From sequence record LR588166.1: 64,000 nucleotides of DNA, one strand, 5' to 3'. Below, one piece after another: positions 46,080 through 52,088 of this stretch (the stretch's first letter is position 1; every line of letters starts with the position of its first letter). The notes below the pieces were generated by a model, which had not been told where the DNA came from, ran no database searches, and saw only the letters and a list, made by a program, of their open reading frames with translations. Made by a program: the position numbers and the translations under genes.

Positions 46080-46577
46080 TTATTTACTCAGCTGTTTTAC
46101 TTTCTCTTTATTCTCTTCTGTCCAGAAATTATTCCAACTACAGAATACCCAACCCTTATAATCTATACTATTATTTACTTTAATACCGGTTTTTTCTTCA
46201 AATACTACCCATTTGCCTTGCCGCGTTATTTTTATAAAAATAATATTAAAATCACCCTCGCTAGCAGTATCGCGTACCTGTGATATCCATGTATCTAACT
46301 GTTTGCACTCTCCTTCGAACAACGAAGTAAATGAAAATTTTGCATACGATTTACATTCAGAATTAAAATGTTCCCATGTATCCGGAGGGAAAATATCACC
46401 TTTATAGGATTTGATTTGATTATTACCTAGTGATGTTTTTCTGACAGAATTTTGTCCTCCTATAAAGGCACCTGAATGTGCTGTTCTGGTAAAGGGTTCG
46501 TTGTAAAATGAGGTAAGATCTTTTGCTACATCTCGTTCCCAGCTACTACCTTTAATTTTACTTTTCGATCCAGACAT
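46080..46577 (-). CDS. Holliday junction resolvase-like PD-(D/E)XK nuclease
   Basis: SK.KG..WER.VAK.L ... GDI.PP ... ECK. Confidence 0.75.
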   Translation of the reverse strand: MSGSKSKIKGSSWERDVAKDLTSFYNEPFTRTAHSGAFIGGQNSVRKTSLGNNQIKSYKGDIFPPDTWEHFNSECKSYAKFSFTSLFEGECKQLDTWISQVRDTASEGDFNIIFIKITRQGKWVVFEEKTGIKVNNSIDYKGWVFCSWNNFWTEENKEKVKQLSK

Positions 46578-46708
46578 GTTTTGTTAACCTTTTATATACC
46601 TGTTAAATTTTACATTATTTAGTTAATTTTATACCCATATAATACTGTCGAGATAAATATGTGTGTAGATAACTTATAGCATTATTTTTAACGATTTTAG
46701 TACAATGG

Positions 46709-46737
46709 TTGACAGTATTAATGTCGTATGCTATAAT
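46709..46737 (+). promoter_or_regulatory. consensus sigma70 promoter with no downstream ORF
   Basis: TTGACA-17-TATAAT with TG extended -10. Confidence 0.85.
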
Positions 46738-46743
46738 CCGCAA

Positions 46744-47649
46744 CATAATAAAACTAAAGGACGTATGTAACAAAACAGACGTTCTCCTAAGTGTTTTAAA
46801 GTTTTTGCTTAGGAAGACCCAGTTGTATGTTTAAAGGGTGAACGGTAACGGGCATTCTTGTTTAAGACTAGTTCTTATGAAGACATTGGCAACTAACATA
46901 GCAGCTTTGTTCCATCATTGGATATTGGTAGTAGAAACTATCCCCATCGTGCCTTTACTGTAGTACCGTTAGAGACGGAGATAACGCAGGAAAAAAGGTT
47001 ATTTAAATTATGATTTTGGGTGCTGCAGAACACTTTCGTAAACAAAAGGAATATAGTTTACGTATACACAACGGGAACGGGAAAAAGCTTTTTAAGCAAA
47101 AACGAGTCCCTGGTAATTGGTGTTTAACGGGAGTGACGTCCCAAATGTTATTCATCGATTAACACTGTAAGAAGGTTGTAAGGGTTATTGTGTTCGAAGT
47201 GGTTTACACAACTGTTCTTCCTACATTTATGTACAGAAGTGTAAACGAAAGGATGTTGCTCTGGTAGAAAAAGATCAACGTACTTTATGACACTATCCTT
47301 GTGACATATGTACTTGTACCAACAACAGCCGCAGGTTACGGATATGGTATTACAAACTGTACTGCGGTTCCGGGAGTTGAAAGTGGATGTTAGCTTAGGT
47401 GGCTGTTTGCTTAATTATAATGTTTAATTTAGGCAATATAAGCGTCGGGTGAGGCTTTCGTAGGTTGCGTGTTTATGCTACGGTGTAAATGGGCTAGACT
47501 ACTGGCGCATACATGAGTATTGTAGGATTGGCGCTTTAATAAAGAAATTTGTTAAAGTTTGAGTTTAGCTCCCCGCTCATTAGCAATAAACGTTGCTAGT
47601 CGATAGTATACCCACGCCTAAATAATGCCGTCATTGTTTAGTTTTTTTT
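46744..47649 (+). ncRNA. candidate ~900-nt large structured non-coding RNA
   Basis: Perfect promoter; no ORF of 60 aa or more in six frames; many helices; 5'/3' closing helix 46750-58/47637-45; ends in a T-tract. Confidence 0.6.
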
Positions 47650-48091: not shown

Positions 48092-48544
48092 ATGAACGAT
48101 TACACACATTACACAGAGGAAGATTTCATATTTTTAGCATATGATTTAAATACTCAGCTTATAAATGATGGATATCCTGACGCTGCTGTAAAATTTATTA
48201 CTAATCAGTTTATTTTAGAGCATAGACATCCTGACGAAATAAAACGTTGTATAGGATGTAATTCTAAAATGTACGAAGATGTTATTGCTACTAAGAGAAA
48301 TTTATCTGGTAAATCGCATTGCAGACATTGCGAATCGAAACTTAGTATGTATAAGGAAGTTGTTAAGGAAGTAGCAAATACAACACAAATACTTCGCATA
48401 CCAGAAAAACATTTAAATTCAGTTAAACGATTAATTAGAATATATAATGAGCAAAACAAAACTAGTGCATATCAGAGTATATTAGTTAAAACAAAGAAAC
48501 TTAACACAGGAGTTTCTAAAAAGTCAAAAAGAAAGGGACGTTAA
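48092..48544 (+). CDS. hypothetical protein with CxxC...CxxC zinc ribbon
   Basis: AGAGGT RBS; GATAAATA at 48052; CIGC and CRHC. Confidence 0.75.
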   Translation: MNDYTHYTEEDFIFLAYDLNTQLINDGYPDAAVKFITNQFILEHRHPDEIKRCIGCNSKMYEDVIATKRNLSGKSHCRHCESKLSMYKEVVKEVANTTQILRIPEKHLNSVKRLIRIYNEQNKTSAYQSILVKTKKLNTGVSKKSKRKGR

Positions 48545-48560
48545 TTGTCCCTTTCTTTTT
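48526..48560. terminator. bidirectional terminator
   Basis: AAAAAGAAAGGGAC-gttaatt-GTCCCTTTCTTTTT. Confidence 0.8.
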
Positions 48561-48786
48561 ATAGGAAGCTTCTACCTGTTTCTGCTTCGATTTTTTGTTT
48601 AATAAATTCTCCTAAACGTACCCGCTCTTGATATGATAAAGACCAAGCAGTGTGCCAGTCAAATCCATTAATTTTATCACATATTTGGACTATTTCGCCT
48701 TCTAATCCCAGTGATTCTTGTTCATATTCTTGTATAACGTTCCTAATATCATCTGGGGTTCCCGATACTAGGATTCTCTGAAAAAA
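48559..48786 (-). CDS. -1 frame extension of the tail chaperone (GT/gp51-like part)
   Basis: 73-codon open frame with no ATG/GTG/TTG, entered at T-TTT-TTC (48786..48780); DWHTAWSLSYQER motif. Confidence 0.7.
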   Translation of the reverse strand, partial: FFQRILVSGTPDDIRNVIQEYEQESLGLEGEIVQICDKINGFDWHTAWSLSYQERVRLGEFIKQKIEAETGRSFL

Positions 48787-49622
48787 CTTACTGGGTTAAA
48801 ATCTACAGGTACTACAAAACTTTTATTACAGTTGTCGCATACTGCATCAAAGTCGCCATTAACTCCTACTTGATTTATTTCTTTTAAAAGACTATCTATT
48901 TTATTAACATCTGCTCTATCTATATTTGCTATAAATTCTTTTATATCAGCCAGTGTCTGAGGAGTATTATTAACTATATCTATACCGTTAGTTTCATCTA
49001 CAATACGAACTATTGTTTTTGCAATTAATTCGAAATTTAATGATGACAGTTCATTTATTGTGTTAGAAAATGCAGAAAGTTTTTCTTCATCTGAATACAT
49101 ATCGCTTTGCATTATTCTAATAAATTTTGCTTGTTCTAATGCAGTTTTTGCAACTGTCATATTATCTGAAAAATCATATGGTCTAATAAATATAGATAGA
49201 CCGTTATCAAGATTCACGACGTATTGATCTTCTAAATAAGTAGACGTATTAATAACATTTAATAAGTCTATTCCATATAAATTTTTATGATTACAATGCG
49301 GGCACGTAGAAGAAATATCTATTGTGTTACCGTATGATGCTGCTTTTATAGCAACACATATCATATGAATGTCATTAATCAAGAGTTTATTTACATCTTT
49401 AATTCCCGGTACACAACTCTTAATTACTTCTTTTAAGCCTTCACCGTTCACTAATGCATCAGGATTTTTTATTAATACTTCATCTTTTCCTGTCATAGCA
49501 TATACCCCTAGTTCTCCAGAATCGGTGTATTCTACAACATTTGATGGATAAAATGAATTTCCGCTGGGCAAACGAATATAAGATTTGAATGTTCTGTAAT
49601 ATTGATGTAATTTGTTGCTCAT
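48768..49622 (-). CDS. baseplate hub/tail assembly chaperone, T4 gp26-like
   Basis: I.LPSG..Y, MT.KDE..IK.PDAL, CP.C and C..C...F.VP..FNP.SFF. Confidence 0.75.
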   Translation of the reverse strand: MSNKLHQYYRTFKSYIRLPSGNSFYPSNVVEYTDSGELGVYAMTGKDEVLIKNPDALVNGEGLKEVIKSCVPGIKDVNKLLINDIHMICVAIKAASYGNTIDISSTCPHCNHKNLYGIDLLNVINTSTYLEDQYVVNLDNGLSIFIRPYDFSDNMTVAKTALEQAKFIRIMQSDMYSDEEKLSAFSNTINELSSLNFELIAKTIVRIVDETNGIDIVNNTPQTLADIKEFIANIDRADVNKIDSLLKEINQVGVNGDFDAVCDNCNKSFVVPVDFNPVSFFRES

Positions 49623-49641
49623 AATGTGTATATGCTCTTTT

Positions 49642-49669
49642 GATAAATATGCTATATACCGTATTTATC
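49642..49669. promoter_or_regulatory. back-to-back late promoter candidates
   Basis: GATAAATA on + (49642..49649) and on - (49662..49669). Confidence 0.65.
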
Positions 49670-49691
49670 ATAGCATTTTATAGAGGTTCTT

Positions 49692-52088
49692 GTGGCAGAA
49701 GATATTAGAATTGTTGGCGTTGATCCTAGTGTCCCAGGCTGGGCTAGAGAAGAAACTCTTAATAAAATAGTATCTGAGTTAAAAAAACTCAATGGATCTA
49801 ATACAAGAGAAAACGACGAACTAAAAGATGCAGTAGATGAACTAGTTAGGGTAACCCGTAGATCTAACGAAGATACATCTAGAACAGATAATAACACTGA
49901 AATAAAAGAAGCATTAAATAGATTATCTTCTTCGTTAAAACAACAGAAAAAATCTGATAATTCTTTATCTGCAAAGCAAGGGGGAAACAAACCTCCCGTA
50001 TTGCCGCCTGACAATAAGAAATCTAAATTAGATACAGATACTATAGGCGCATTTATTACTGCCGTCGGTACTGCTTCAAAGGCAGTAGCAAAATTTACTT
50101 TAAGTATGGCATCTTTTGCAGTTGGCGGAAGTATATATGCTGCATTAAAGCAAGCTGCATCGTCGCAACTTACTTTATCTAGAGATTTATATAAATCAGG
50201 TTGGAACTTCGGAACGGTATTAGACGATGCATCTGGTATTATTAAATCTACCAACTTAGACGGTATTTCGTATGCCATAAAAGGTTTAGGTATAAATTCA
50301 TCTGCACTATCTGAAGTATTAAAAGGCAATGAATTAGCAATACAAAAATACGGAATAAAATCGTTTGTAGATTTGTCTTCTAGCTTAAAAAGACAAGGCA
50401 ATAGCTTAGGTATGTCTTTAAAAGAAACAGCAGATTATGTAGGAGAATATTTAGAATCTCAACGTTTAATGGGTACATTTGATAAAATGCGCCAAGTAAA
50501 CATGACTGCCCTTGCATCTAAAGCACTTAAAGATACCCAAGCATTTGCTACTGCATTAAGAATGTCTACAGAAGACCTTCAGGCAAAAATGAATGAAAGT
50601 TTAAAAGATGTAGACTTTCGTGTAGCAATAGAATCAGTTAACGCAAATTCTAAAGAAGCCGCCGCCCAAATTTATGCCGCTTTGCCGGAACAATTGCAAA
50701 CTATGTTTAAGGTAGCTCTTAAAGATACTCCGTCTTTTATGGCATCCAAAGAATACGCCGATTTAATAAAATCCGGGCAAGGAGAATTAGCTAGACAAAT
50801 AATTGCAGTATCATCTGGACTGAAATCTGGTAATATAACTAACGGTCAGGCAGATGATGCAATGAAACGACTTATAAAATCTACTAGTTTTGCAGAAAGT
50901 ACAATGCGTAGACTTGCTATGCTAGATGCTCGTGGACTAATAGATAGTAATGTTGCTGCTGCTGCGTATGGATTAAAAGACCTTAGAGATAAAATGGATG
51001 GTCATTATGAAGGAATCCAAAATACAGAAGCTACAAATTTAGCAAAAGTTGAAGATGTAAGAAATAGAGCATTAGCTGTATTAGATACGTTTGTATCATC
51101 TATAATGAGGGCAGGATTCGAATCTGATGAATTTGCTAAATTATTAGATAATGCAAATGAAATGTTAAAAACAATTCATAATACAGCAGAAGACTTAGGT
51201 AAACAATTAGGTCCGGAATTATTTAAATTTGTTAACAATGCTATGGAATATCTAAATGGTTTATTTAGTAAAGATGTAGCAGGAAATATAAATGTAAATT
51301 ATTCTAAAATAATAGGAGATATTTTAACAAGTTCCGGTGCTGCTATAGTAGTTGGCGTTCTTGCTATTATGACTACATTTAAAGGTGTTGTTATTTCTTC
51401 GTTATCGTCGTGGCTTAAAGGTGCATCAGGACCTATGTCATCATTAGGTGGCACCGTAAAAACTATAGCAGGAAGATTAGGGGCATTTGCAGCACTAGCA
51501 GTATCGTTTACAAATGGAATAGGTAGATTAAGTCAATCAATTTCGGAAGGCGGCGATGCAATAGAATCTGCATTGAATTTTTTATCGGGCGCCGGCGAAG
51601 GTATAATAGATCCTGTGTTTAAATCCCTTACATGGGCAGCTAACAAATTAGGTATAGTATCTGATGAAGCAGCAGATGGATTTAGTAAATACATCAGTGA
51701 TACTAATTTGCAACAGTTCTTGGGTCTACAAGATATACCTATAAAAGTAGAAACTACTAATAAACCTGCATATACACCGCCTGGACCTACTGCTACTAAA
51801 ACATCTGCATACGGTAAAATAGAAACTCCGAAAGCTCCTGCTATAATTCCTACAGCTCAGCCAGATGTAGCAGACGCAGCAAAACAAAGTCCTACTCCTG
51901 TAGATCCTACTAGCAATATAAAGCCTATAGAAAATACAGGAATGAGTTCTCAAGACATGCTAAATAGAAGTACAGATAAACTTATACGTTTACAAGAAGA
52001 ACAAATACGACAGTTACAAGAGCTTGTAGATATTCAGCGCAGAGCATTAGCTGCTACTAGAGAAACTGGATTTACAAGAACTAGGTAA
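49692..52088 (+). CDS. putative tape measure protein (798 aa)
   Basis: Long helical Ala/Gly-rich protein next to the chaperone and portal. Confidence 0.6.
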   Translation: MAEDIRIVGVDPSVPGWAREETLNKIVSELKKLNGSNTRENDELKDAVDELVRVTRRSNEDTSRTDNNTEIKEALNRLSSSLKQQKKSDNSLSAKQGGNKPPVLPPDNKKSKLDTDTIGAFITAVGTASKAVAKFTLSMASFAVGGSIYAALKQAASSQLTLSRDLYKSGWNFGTVLDDASGIIKSTNLDGISYAIKGLGINSSALSEVLKGNELAIQKYGIKSFVDLSSSLKRQGNSLGMSLKETADYVGEYLESQRLMGTFDKMRQVNMTALASKALKDTQAFATALRMSTEDLQAKMNESLKDVDFRVAIESVNANSKEAAAQIYAALPEQLQTMFKVALKDTPSFMASKEYADLIKSGQGELARQIIAVSSGLKSGNITNGQADDAMKRLIKSTSFAESTMRRLAMLDARGLIDSNVAAAAYGLKDLRDKMDGHYEGIQNTEATNLAKVEDVRNRALAVLDTFVSSIMRAGFESDEFAKLLDNANEMLKTIHNTAEDLGKQLGPELFKFVNNAMEYLNGLFSKDVAGNINVNYSKIIGDILTSSGAAIVVGVLAIMTTFKGVVISSLSSWLKGASGPMSSLGGTVKTIAGRLGAFAALAVSFTNGIGRLSQSISEGGDAIESALNFLSGAGEGIIDPVFKSLTWAANKLGIVSDEAADGFSKYISDTNLQQFLGLQDIPIKVETTNKPAYTPPGPTATKTSAYGKIETPKAPAIIPTAQPDVADAAKQSPTPVDPTSNIKPIENTGMSSQDMLNRSTDKLIRLQEEQIRQLQELVDIQRRALAATRETGFTRTR

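Follow-up and report, generated by a model that had tools for sequence, protein, structure and literature searches.

One gene for two predicted proteins: a conserved candidate -1 frameshift cassette in the gp26/gp51 family of jumbo phages related to T4

Tail assembly chaperone (TAC) genes reportedly carry -1 frameshifts that are conserved across very divergent long-tailed phages, an observation credited to Xu, Hendrix and Duda in 2004 and cited in PMC9024508. In lambda G/GT and P2 E/E', ribosomes slip by -1 close to the 3' end of a gene for tail morphogenesis, so that a short form predominates and a smaller amount is made of a form extended at its C-terminus; the lambda slip site is G_GGA_AAG. 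The cassettes of Escherichia coli dnaX (tau/gamma) and of IS elements consist of an X_XXY_YYZ heptamer, in their case A_AAA_AAG, with a short spacer, a downstream stem-loop and an upstream Shine-Dalgarno-like stimulator. T4-type phages are, to our knowledge, usually cited as having no conserved tail-assembly frameshift, and we know of no mechanism for gp26 and gp51, which in this respect are among the last of the T4 tail proteins. Both are listed as hub assembly chaperones, gp51 is required yet absent from the particle, and the T4 homologues are reported as assembly factors that are absent from virions or of uncertain presence there (PMC3004832).

T4 gp26 (208 aa) and gp51 (249 aa) each match the Pfam family PF12322 over their full length (E=8.8e-64, 215.6 bits, and E=3.9e-52, 177.5 bits, respectively), and gp51 homologues combine PF12322 with a second domain, Gp51_C (PF28602). 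The two T4 proteins are the products of two diverged genes on opposite strands, in agreement with an earlier note on the DNA described here, which had stated that T4 keeps genes 26 and 51 separate. An internal-start product of gene 26, named 26', is also part of the T4 annotation.

The stretch of DNA analysed here, referred to as the window, comprises the right-hand 64,000 nucleotides of a Pseudomonas aeruginosa jumbo phage of the PA5oct/MIJ3 type (Wroclawvirus). Positions 48400-49800, which enclose the locus of interest (Table 1), match LR588166 at 100% identity and ten other GenBank records at 98.6-100%. The 284-aa product of the 0-frame ORF belongs to PF12322, 'T4_baseplate' (E=3.2e-25), with a score of 89.5 bits against a cut-off of 24.5 and an alignment that spans model positions 16-219 of 219, and it also matches phrog_150, 'baseplate hub' (E=3.9e-23). 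Its homologues are all 274-303 aa long and share the same end point. An AF2 model of the 284-aa body is confident (pLDDT 91); it has no Foldseek match among solved structures, and in VIA-align only a helical hairpin aligns, with a generic Z of about 7. Taken jointly with the whole frameshift explanation developed below, it is highly probable from these family matches that the PA5oct group has this gene as its only member of the T4 gp26/gp51 family of baseplate-hub assembly proteins. In all 11 GenBank records of the group the identical 284-aa ORF is annotated, and no feature is given for the 220 nt that follow it.

Table 1. Positions in the window of the gp26/gp51-family gene, its putative frameshift elements and its divergent neighbour
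Feature	Position	Strand	Remarks
0-frame ORF, gp26/gp51-family gene, 284 aa	49622..48768	-	stop TAG 48770-48768; PF12322, phrog_150
Slippery heptamer T_TTT_TTC in X_XXY_YYZ phase; codons AGT TTT TTC = S-F-F	48786-48780	-	in 0 frame, inside overlap of both frames
-1 extension, 73 codons + TAA	48780..48559 (codons 48780..48562, stop TAA 48561-48559)	-	small helical Gp51_C-like domain
Predicted hairpin, candidate frameshift stimulator	48773-48741	-	starts 6 nt 3' of heptamer; -13.8 kcal/mol, z -1.98 (modest)
Intrinsic-terminator-like hairpin + T tract	48561-48525	-	between convergent genes; directly after -1 stop
Divergent 798-aa virion protein, putatively tape-measure-like	49692..52088	+	PA5oct orthologue in virions by ESI-MS/MS

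The gene ends with the codons CCA GTA AGT TTT TTC AGA GAA TCC TAG, the 0-frame stop following three codons past the heptamer T_TTT_TTC. The -1 frame is closed upstream by a TAA five codons before the shift, and beyond the heptamer it stays open through a 73-codon extension that contains no ATG, GTG or TTG anywhere, near-cognate ATC and ATT codons being present. The heptamer, the upstream TAA, the 73 open codons that lack the three usual start codons, and the terminator had all been described in the earlier note, and all are present in the sequence as it described them. A slip into the -1 frame at the heptamer would give a predicted product of 354 aa beside the 284-aa short form, and the extension forms a three-helix domain in an AF2 model (pLDDT 89); searched on its own, it has no match in Pfam, PHROGs, PDB sequences or Foldseek PDB. 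The terminator is positioned after the stop of the -1 frame and not after that of the 0 frame, the TAA of the -1 frame falling inside the first arm of its hairpin. That hairpin (48525-48561) is bidirectional, being shared with a convergent 150-aa cysteine-containing ORF (48092-48544, + strand) that has no Pfam or PHROG family.

Substitution patterns in the seven Wroclawvirus genomes aligned base by base, among the 11 GenBank matches, reveal how the two frames have been maintained. The 0-frame ORF has accumulated 27 substitutions, 24 of them at third codon positions and 25 synonymous. None of the five SNPs in the extension alters the protein read in the -1 frame, while most would change a residue if read in the other two frames, and the -1 frame is thus under purifying selection.

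The same arrangement recurs far outside Wroclawvirus. Seventeen loci with 27-56% identity were examined singly, eight of them from named phages (Agrobacterium Atu_ph07, Pectobacterium CBB, Escherichia 121Q, Klebsiella RaK2, Salicola SCTP-2, Xanthomonas Xoo-sp13 and XbC2, and Stenotrophomonas CM1) and nine from metagenomic contigs. Each of the 17 has an in-frame T_TTT_TTC, T_TTT_TTT or A_AAT_TTT located 1-14 codons ahead of the 0-frame stop, and each continues into a -1 ORF of 70-81 codons, the products of which are mutually alignable and share the motif R..LL..PEEI...WYMRGG...LS..ER. Similarly, a heptamer is found in 79 of 80 further IMG/VR loci, 0-5 codons before the stop, the one exception (L041) reading TCT TTT TCT, a sequence that still allows a single-tRNA slip. 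The extension domain lies in the -1 frame in all 77 of the IMG/VR loci with enough downstream sequence (HMM E 1e-7 to 1e-31) and in the +1 frame in none, and a second scan yielded 78 further frameshift-type loci. Because phase, heptamer and -1 extension coincide in 79 of 80 loci and a +1 arrangement is never seen, the recurrence is far beyond chance, with the qualification that the loci are phylogenetically related, so that counts and p-values overstate their independence. The codon preceding the T run always ends in T while the residue it encodes varies (N, S, D, T, H, R, A), a fixed wobble base that points to selection on the nucleotide and not on the protein. Conservation of the heptamer in relatives, which the earlier note had offered as a check on its proposal, thus extends from the seven Wroclawvirus genomes to the 17 single loci and to all but one of the IMG/VR loci, and the comparisons indicate that heptamer, frame relation and -1 product are kept in divergent relatives beyond what coding needs would explain.

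RNA folding adds a further, more qualified element. Across 80 non-identical loci, the 50 nt past the slip site have a mean folding energy of -10.7 kcal/mol, as compared to -4.8 to -7.1 kcal/mol in five control windows from the same genes, which are significantly less stable (paired Wilcoxon p=1e-12). The stems that account for this stability differ between loci in sequence and position, starting 0 to 11 nt from the site, and RNAalifold returned no consensus structure for 17 aligned slip regions. Since there is no single alignable consensus structure, a role of the window hairpin as frameshift stimulator is likely rather than proven.

The relationship of the predicted long product to gp51 is visible only with family profiles and not with single sequences. 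An hhalign comparison of the single-sequence extension with T4 gp51, gp25 and uvsY.-1 was negative, and the extension alone aligns with the gp51 C-terminus at 47% probability (E=2e-4) when profiles are compared. When a profile of the 17 trans-frame products is compared with one built from 92 gp51 homologues, the two align at 95.3% probability (E=2e-8), colinearly over residues 46 to 351, and the alignment crosses the shift junction, pairing NPVSFF/QRILVSGTPDDI (shift at the slash) with DIVDVFK-LLVNPDEI. An Atlas search flagged Gp51_C (PF28602) in a similar cluster. PF12322 membership and the colinear trans-frame alignment together point to a gp26-type short product and a gp51-type long product, and it is most likely, as judged from these comparisons, that one gene yields both.

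The resemblance to T4 extends to gene position, as in both phages the PF12322 gene is transcribed divergently from adjoining hub or tape-measure genes. The two predicted forms of the window protein share an identical 281-residue N-terminal body because they come from a single gene, whereas the T4 pair comes from separate genes, and the window extension is about 25 residues longer than the T4-type Gp51_C. T4 gene 26 has no slip site; it ends ...EFFELL and is followed by gene 25. The last residues of gp26 (...KEFFELL; gene 26 at L017 3803-4429) resemble the jumbo-phage trans-frame junction FF-R-x-x-LL, as if they were a vestige of the first residues of the extension.

A third genetic layout emerged when the extension profile was searched against 1.8 billion representative proteins. 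Most of the 638 relatives found are ORFs of 58-98 aa. Among the best 150, however, about 20 are proteins of 319-351 aa that consist of a PF12322 body with the extension joined to it in frame. At each of the four fused loci examined (L109, L110, L111 and L119), a short PF12322 paralogue of 294-341 codons lies directly upstream and ends ...NFFTR or ...SFFND, a non-slippery site. A fused long gene with an adjoining short paralogue means that this sister clade of uncultured phages also makes short and long forms, in its case from two genes and not from one as is likely in the window. The sister clade otherwise has the same family, the same extension domain at the same junction, and the same order of portal, large protein and then divergent PF12322 genes. 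A further IMG/VR locus (L112 1565-3519) contains an upstream PF12322 paralogue together with a frameshift-type second copy, and is possibly an intermediate between the one-gene and two-gene layouts. The pair of short and long forms is kept in three different genetic layouts. One 361-aa homologue (P0097), considered as a further candidate, has no extension fused to its body. The T4-type portal gene of one fused-clade phage (L110 1-709) has intein and HNH endonuclease domains (PF14890, PF13392) inside Portal_T4.

The RaK2 orthologue of the divergent 798-aa protein is annotated as tape-measure-like, and the portal gene comes after the 798-aa gene. The earlier note had described the frameshift gene as divergent from the tape measure; the orientation is as it described, while the tape-measure identity is a putative one, the 798-aa protein itself matching no Pfam or PHROG family. 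Among relatives the large neighbour ranges from 722 to 1473 aa (L012 1-1928; L005/L006 1-2919), and in L012 it includes a VanY peptidase domain; such size variation and domain content are typical of tape-measure proteins. In the PA5oct virion proteomics annotation the gp26/gp51-family gene is not flagged, unlike its 798-aa neighbour and the portal. On the other side of the locus, downstream of it, is a protein-free stretch of about 0.9 kb with only short ORFs (46652-47649). A gene for a PDDEXK/EndoVII or RusA-like resolvase (46080-46577, - strand) lies near the gp26/51 gene, and stays near it in PA5oct (gp342), 121Q, CBB, RaK2, L004, L008 and L012.

The cassette, its conservation, the purifying selection on the -1 frame and the colinearity with gp51 are computed directly from the sequences, and with them at hand it is very probable that a programmed -1 ribosomal frameshift on T_TTT_TTC makes a gp26-type short form and a gp51-type long form. 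Most ribosomes would remain in frame 0 and terminate three codons past the slip site, releasing the 284-aa gp26-type form with the PF12322 domain only. A fraction would move back one base, with the A-site and P-site tRNA-Phe both re-pairing on T_TTT_TTC, a slip probably aided by the hairpin 6 nt downstream and by the nearby 0-frame stop; these ribosomes would translate 73 more codons, giving the 354-aa form with a C-terminal three-helix domain similar to T4 Gp51_C. The two forms would be made in a fixed ratio, and one gene would replace genes 26 and 51 of T4 or the paralogue pair of the sister clade. This is the frameshift, with 284-aa and 354-aa products, that the earlier note had proposed, and it has gained strong comparative support from the conserved site and domain, the wobble T, the synonymous SNPs, the downstream fold and the sister-clade fusions. 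Ribosomal slippage itself and its efficiency are inferred, as is a fixed-ratio role of the products as non-structural hub or tail chaperones in the manner of lambda G/GT.

Other routes to the same arrangement have to be weighed against ribosomal frameshifting. The same 354-aa protein would result if RNA polymerase added one U on the run of six T's and the transcript were then translated normally. The homopolymer that such transcriptional slippage needs is present and, together with the wobble T by which it is extended, conserved, and the protein product would be indistinguishable; moreover, the RNA-seq sequences are consensus contigs, and because these are assembled contigs and not raw reads, rare variants such as minor transcriptional-slippage RNAs on T6 would be invisible in them. 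Six T's are, however, short for efficient transcriptional slippage in bacteria, and twelve IMG/VR loci, together with L005 and L006, have five T's yet a valid heptamer, A_AAT_TTT. The run is always found in X_XXY_YYZ phase, and structure is enriched downstream of the site, where ribosomes would be affected. Slippage by the polymerase is, on balance, improbable. It is still harder to see the downstream frame as an independent small gene whose unfused protein would arise from its own initiation or from termination-reinitiation. Many relatives do have the downstream ORF annotated as a separate small gene with its own possible start codon (ORFs of 36-73 aa with ATG or TTG are called), the window has its near-cognate ATC and ATT codons, and T4 gene 26 provides a precedent for an internal start in 26'. 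The window and its group, on the other hand, offer none of the three usual start codons in 73 codons. Among 64 non-identical loci, 39 have no start codon in the first nine extension codons, and since the conserved N-terminal part (R..LL..PEEI) there lies upstream of any start, independent initiation cannot make this part of the domain at those loci. A separate gene would also leave the heptamer and the wobble T unexplained, and in both the fusions and T4 gp51 the domain lies C-terminal to a PF12322 body and a motif runs across the junction. Separate translation is accordingly a very improbable account of the conserved pattern.

It might also be asked whether the two frames are real at all, as homopolymers are error-prone and a miscounted T could disguise a true single ORF of 354 aa; alternatively, the locus could be a decaying gene that leaves a truncated pseudogene. 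The earlier note had raised the possibility of such a homopolymer error, and no differing T count was found. The seven aligned Wroclawvirus genomes, which were independently sequenced and come from Europe, Japan and Thailand, all have the same T6 run, and four more read-derived contig sets, two of them from RNA-seq and two from unrelated metagenomes, keep the six T's and have no indel in 48400-49800; one of the RNA-seq contigs covers the gene plus the extension. Unrelated samples supply well over 150 loci with the same out-of-frame layout, and purifying selection on the -1 frame is at odds with decay. Error and decay are thus effectively refuted.

As a cassette, then, the window site is classical in kind. 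It has the X_XXY_YYZ heptamer, short spacer and downstream stem-loop of the dnaX and IS-element cassettes, from which it differs in that its heptamer is of the all-U type, that no Shine-Dalgarno-like stimulator is seen upstream, and that the shifted product is longer where that of dnaX is shorter. No report of such a cassette was found for this protein family: the PA5oct and CBB papers mention no frameshift, and full-text searches of the literature, with subscription-only papers outside their reach, found none described in gp26/gp51-family (baseplate-hub) genes.

The comparison with lambda G/GT is of a different nature. Like G/GT and P2 E/E', the window gene would produce a major short and a minor, C-terminally extended form by a -1 slip near its 3' end, and its cassette, like that of lambda G/GT, is widely conserved and adjoins a putative tape-measure gene. 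The window body (281 aa) is, however, twice the size of a lambda-type TAC body, and the gene is divergent from the 798-aa gene, whereas lambda-type genes share a strand with the tail tube and tape-measure genes and are flanked by them; no tube protein of the T4 gp19 type turned up in a search of the MIJ3 record. The window gene has no match to a TAC Pfam family, its only approach to a TAC PHROG being phrog_15960 at E=0.015, and neither Foldseek nor VIA-align nor a PDB match relates it to the TAC fold. As there is no fold match, no structural link to TACs is claimed. The earlier note had connected T4-type gp26 and gp51 with G/GT chaperones; the gp26/gp51 part of that connection holds, through PF12322 and the colinear trans-frame product, and the G/GT part is a functional analogy only, drawn from the pair of short and long forms, the wide conservation and the adjoining probable tape measure. 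Similarly, a chaperone function for the window gene would be an extension of the T4 literature and not of any fold match. By the same analogy it is conceivable, and put forward tentatively, that gp26/gp51 are the T4-lineage counterpart of the G/GT chaperone pair, with the short form holding tape-measure or hub proteins and the long form recruiting the next partner sub-stoichiometrically via its Gp51_C-like domain. If this were true, T4 would be no exception to the tail-gene frameshift rule, its frameshift having been resolved into two genes, and the 'catalytic' role of gp51, long without an explanation, could be tested directly.

For the phages themselves, the consequences begin with annotation. 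The 73 codons are unannotated or appear as an orphan 'hypothetical protein' in 11 of 11 GenBank genomes and in most relatives, and the annotation should thus become a joined CDS, which matters in that phages of the PA5oct group are under study for therapy. More broadly, a large clade of T4-related jumbo phages, including PA5oct, RaK2, 121Q, CBB, GAP32, Atu_ph07 and hundreds of uncultured phages, most likely uses a -1 slip within one gene, an arrangement that would tie T4 gp26 and gp51 together as a short and long pair and provide a concrete model for them.
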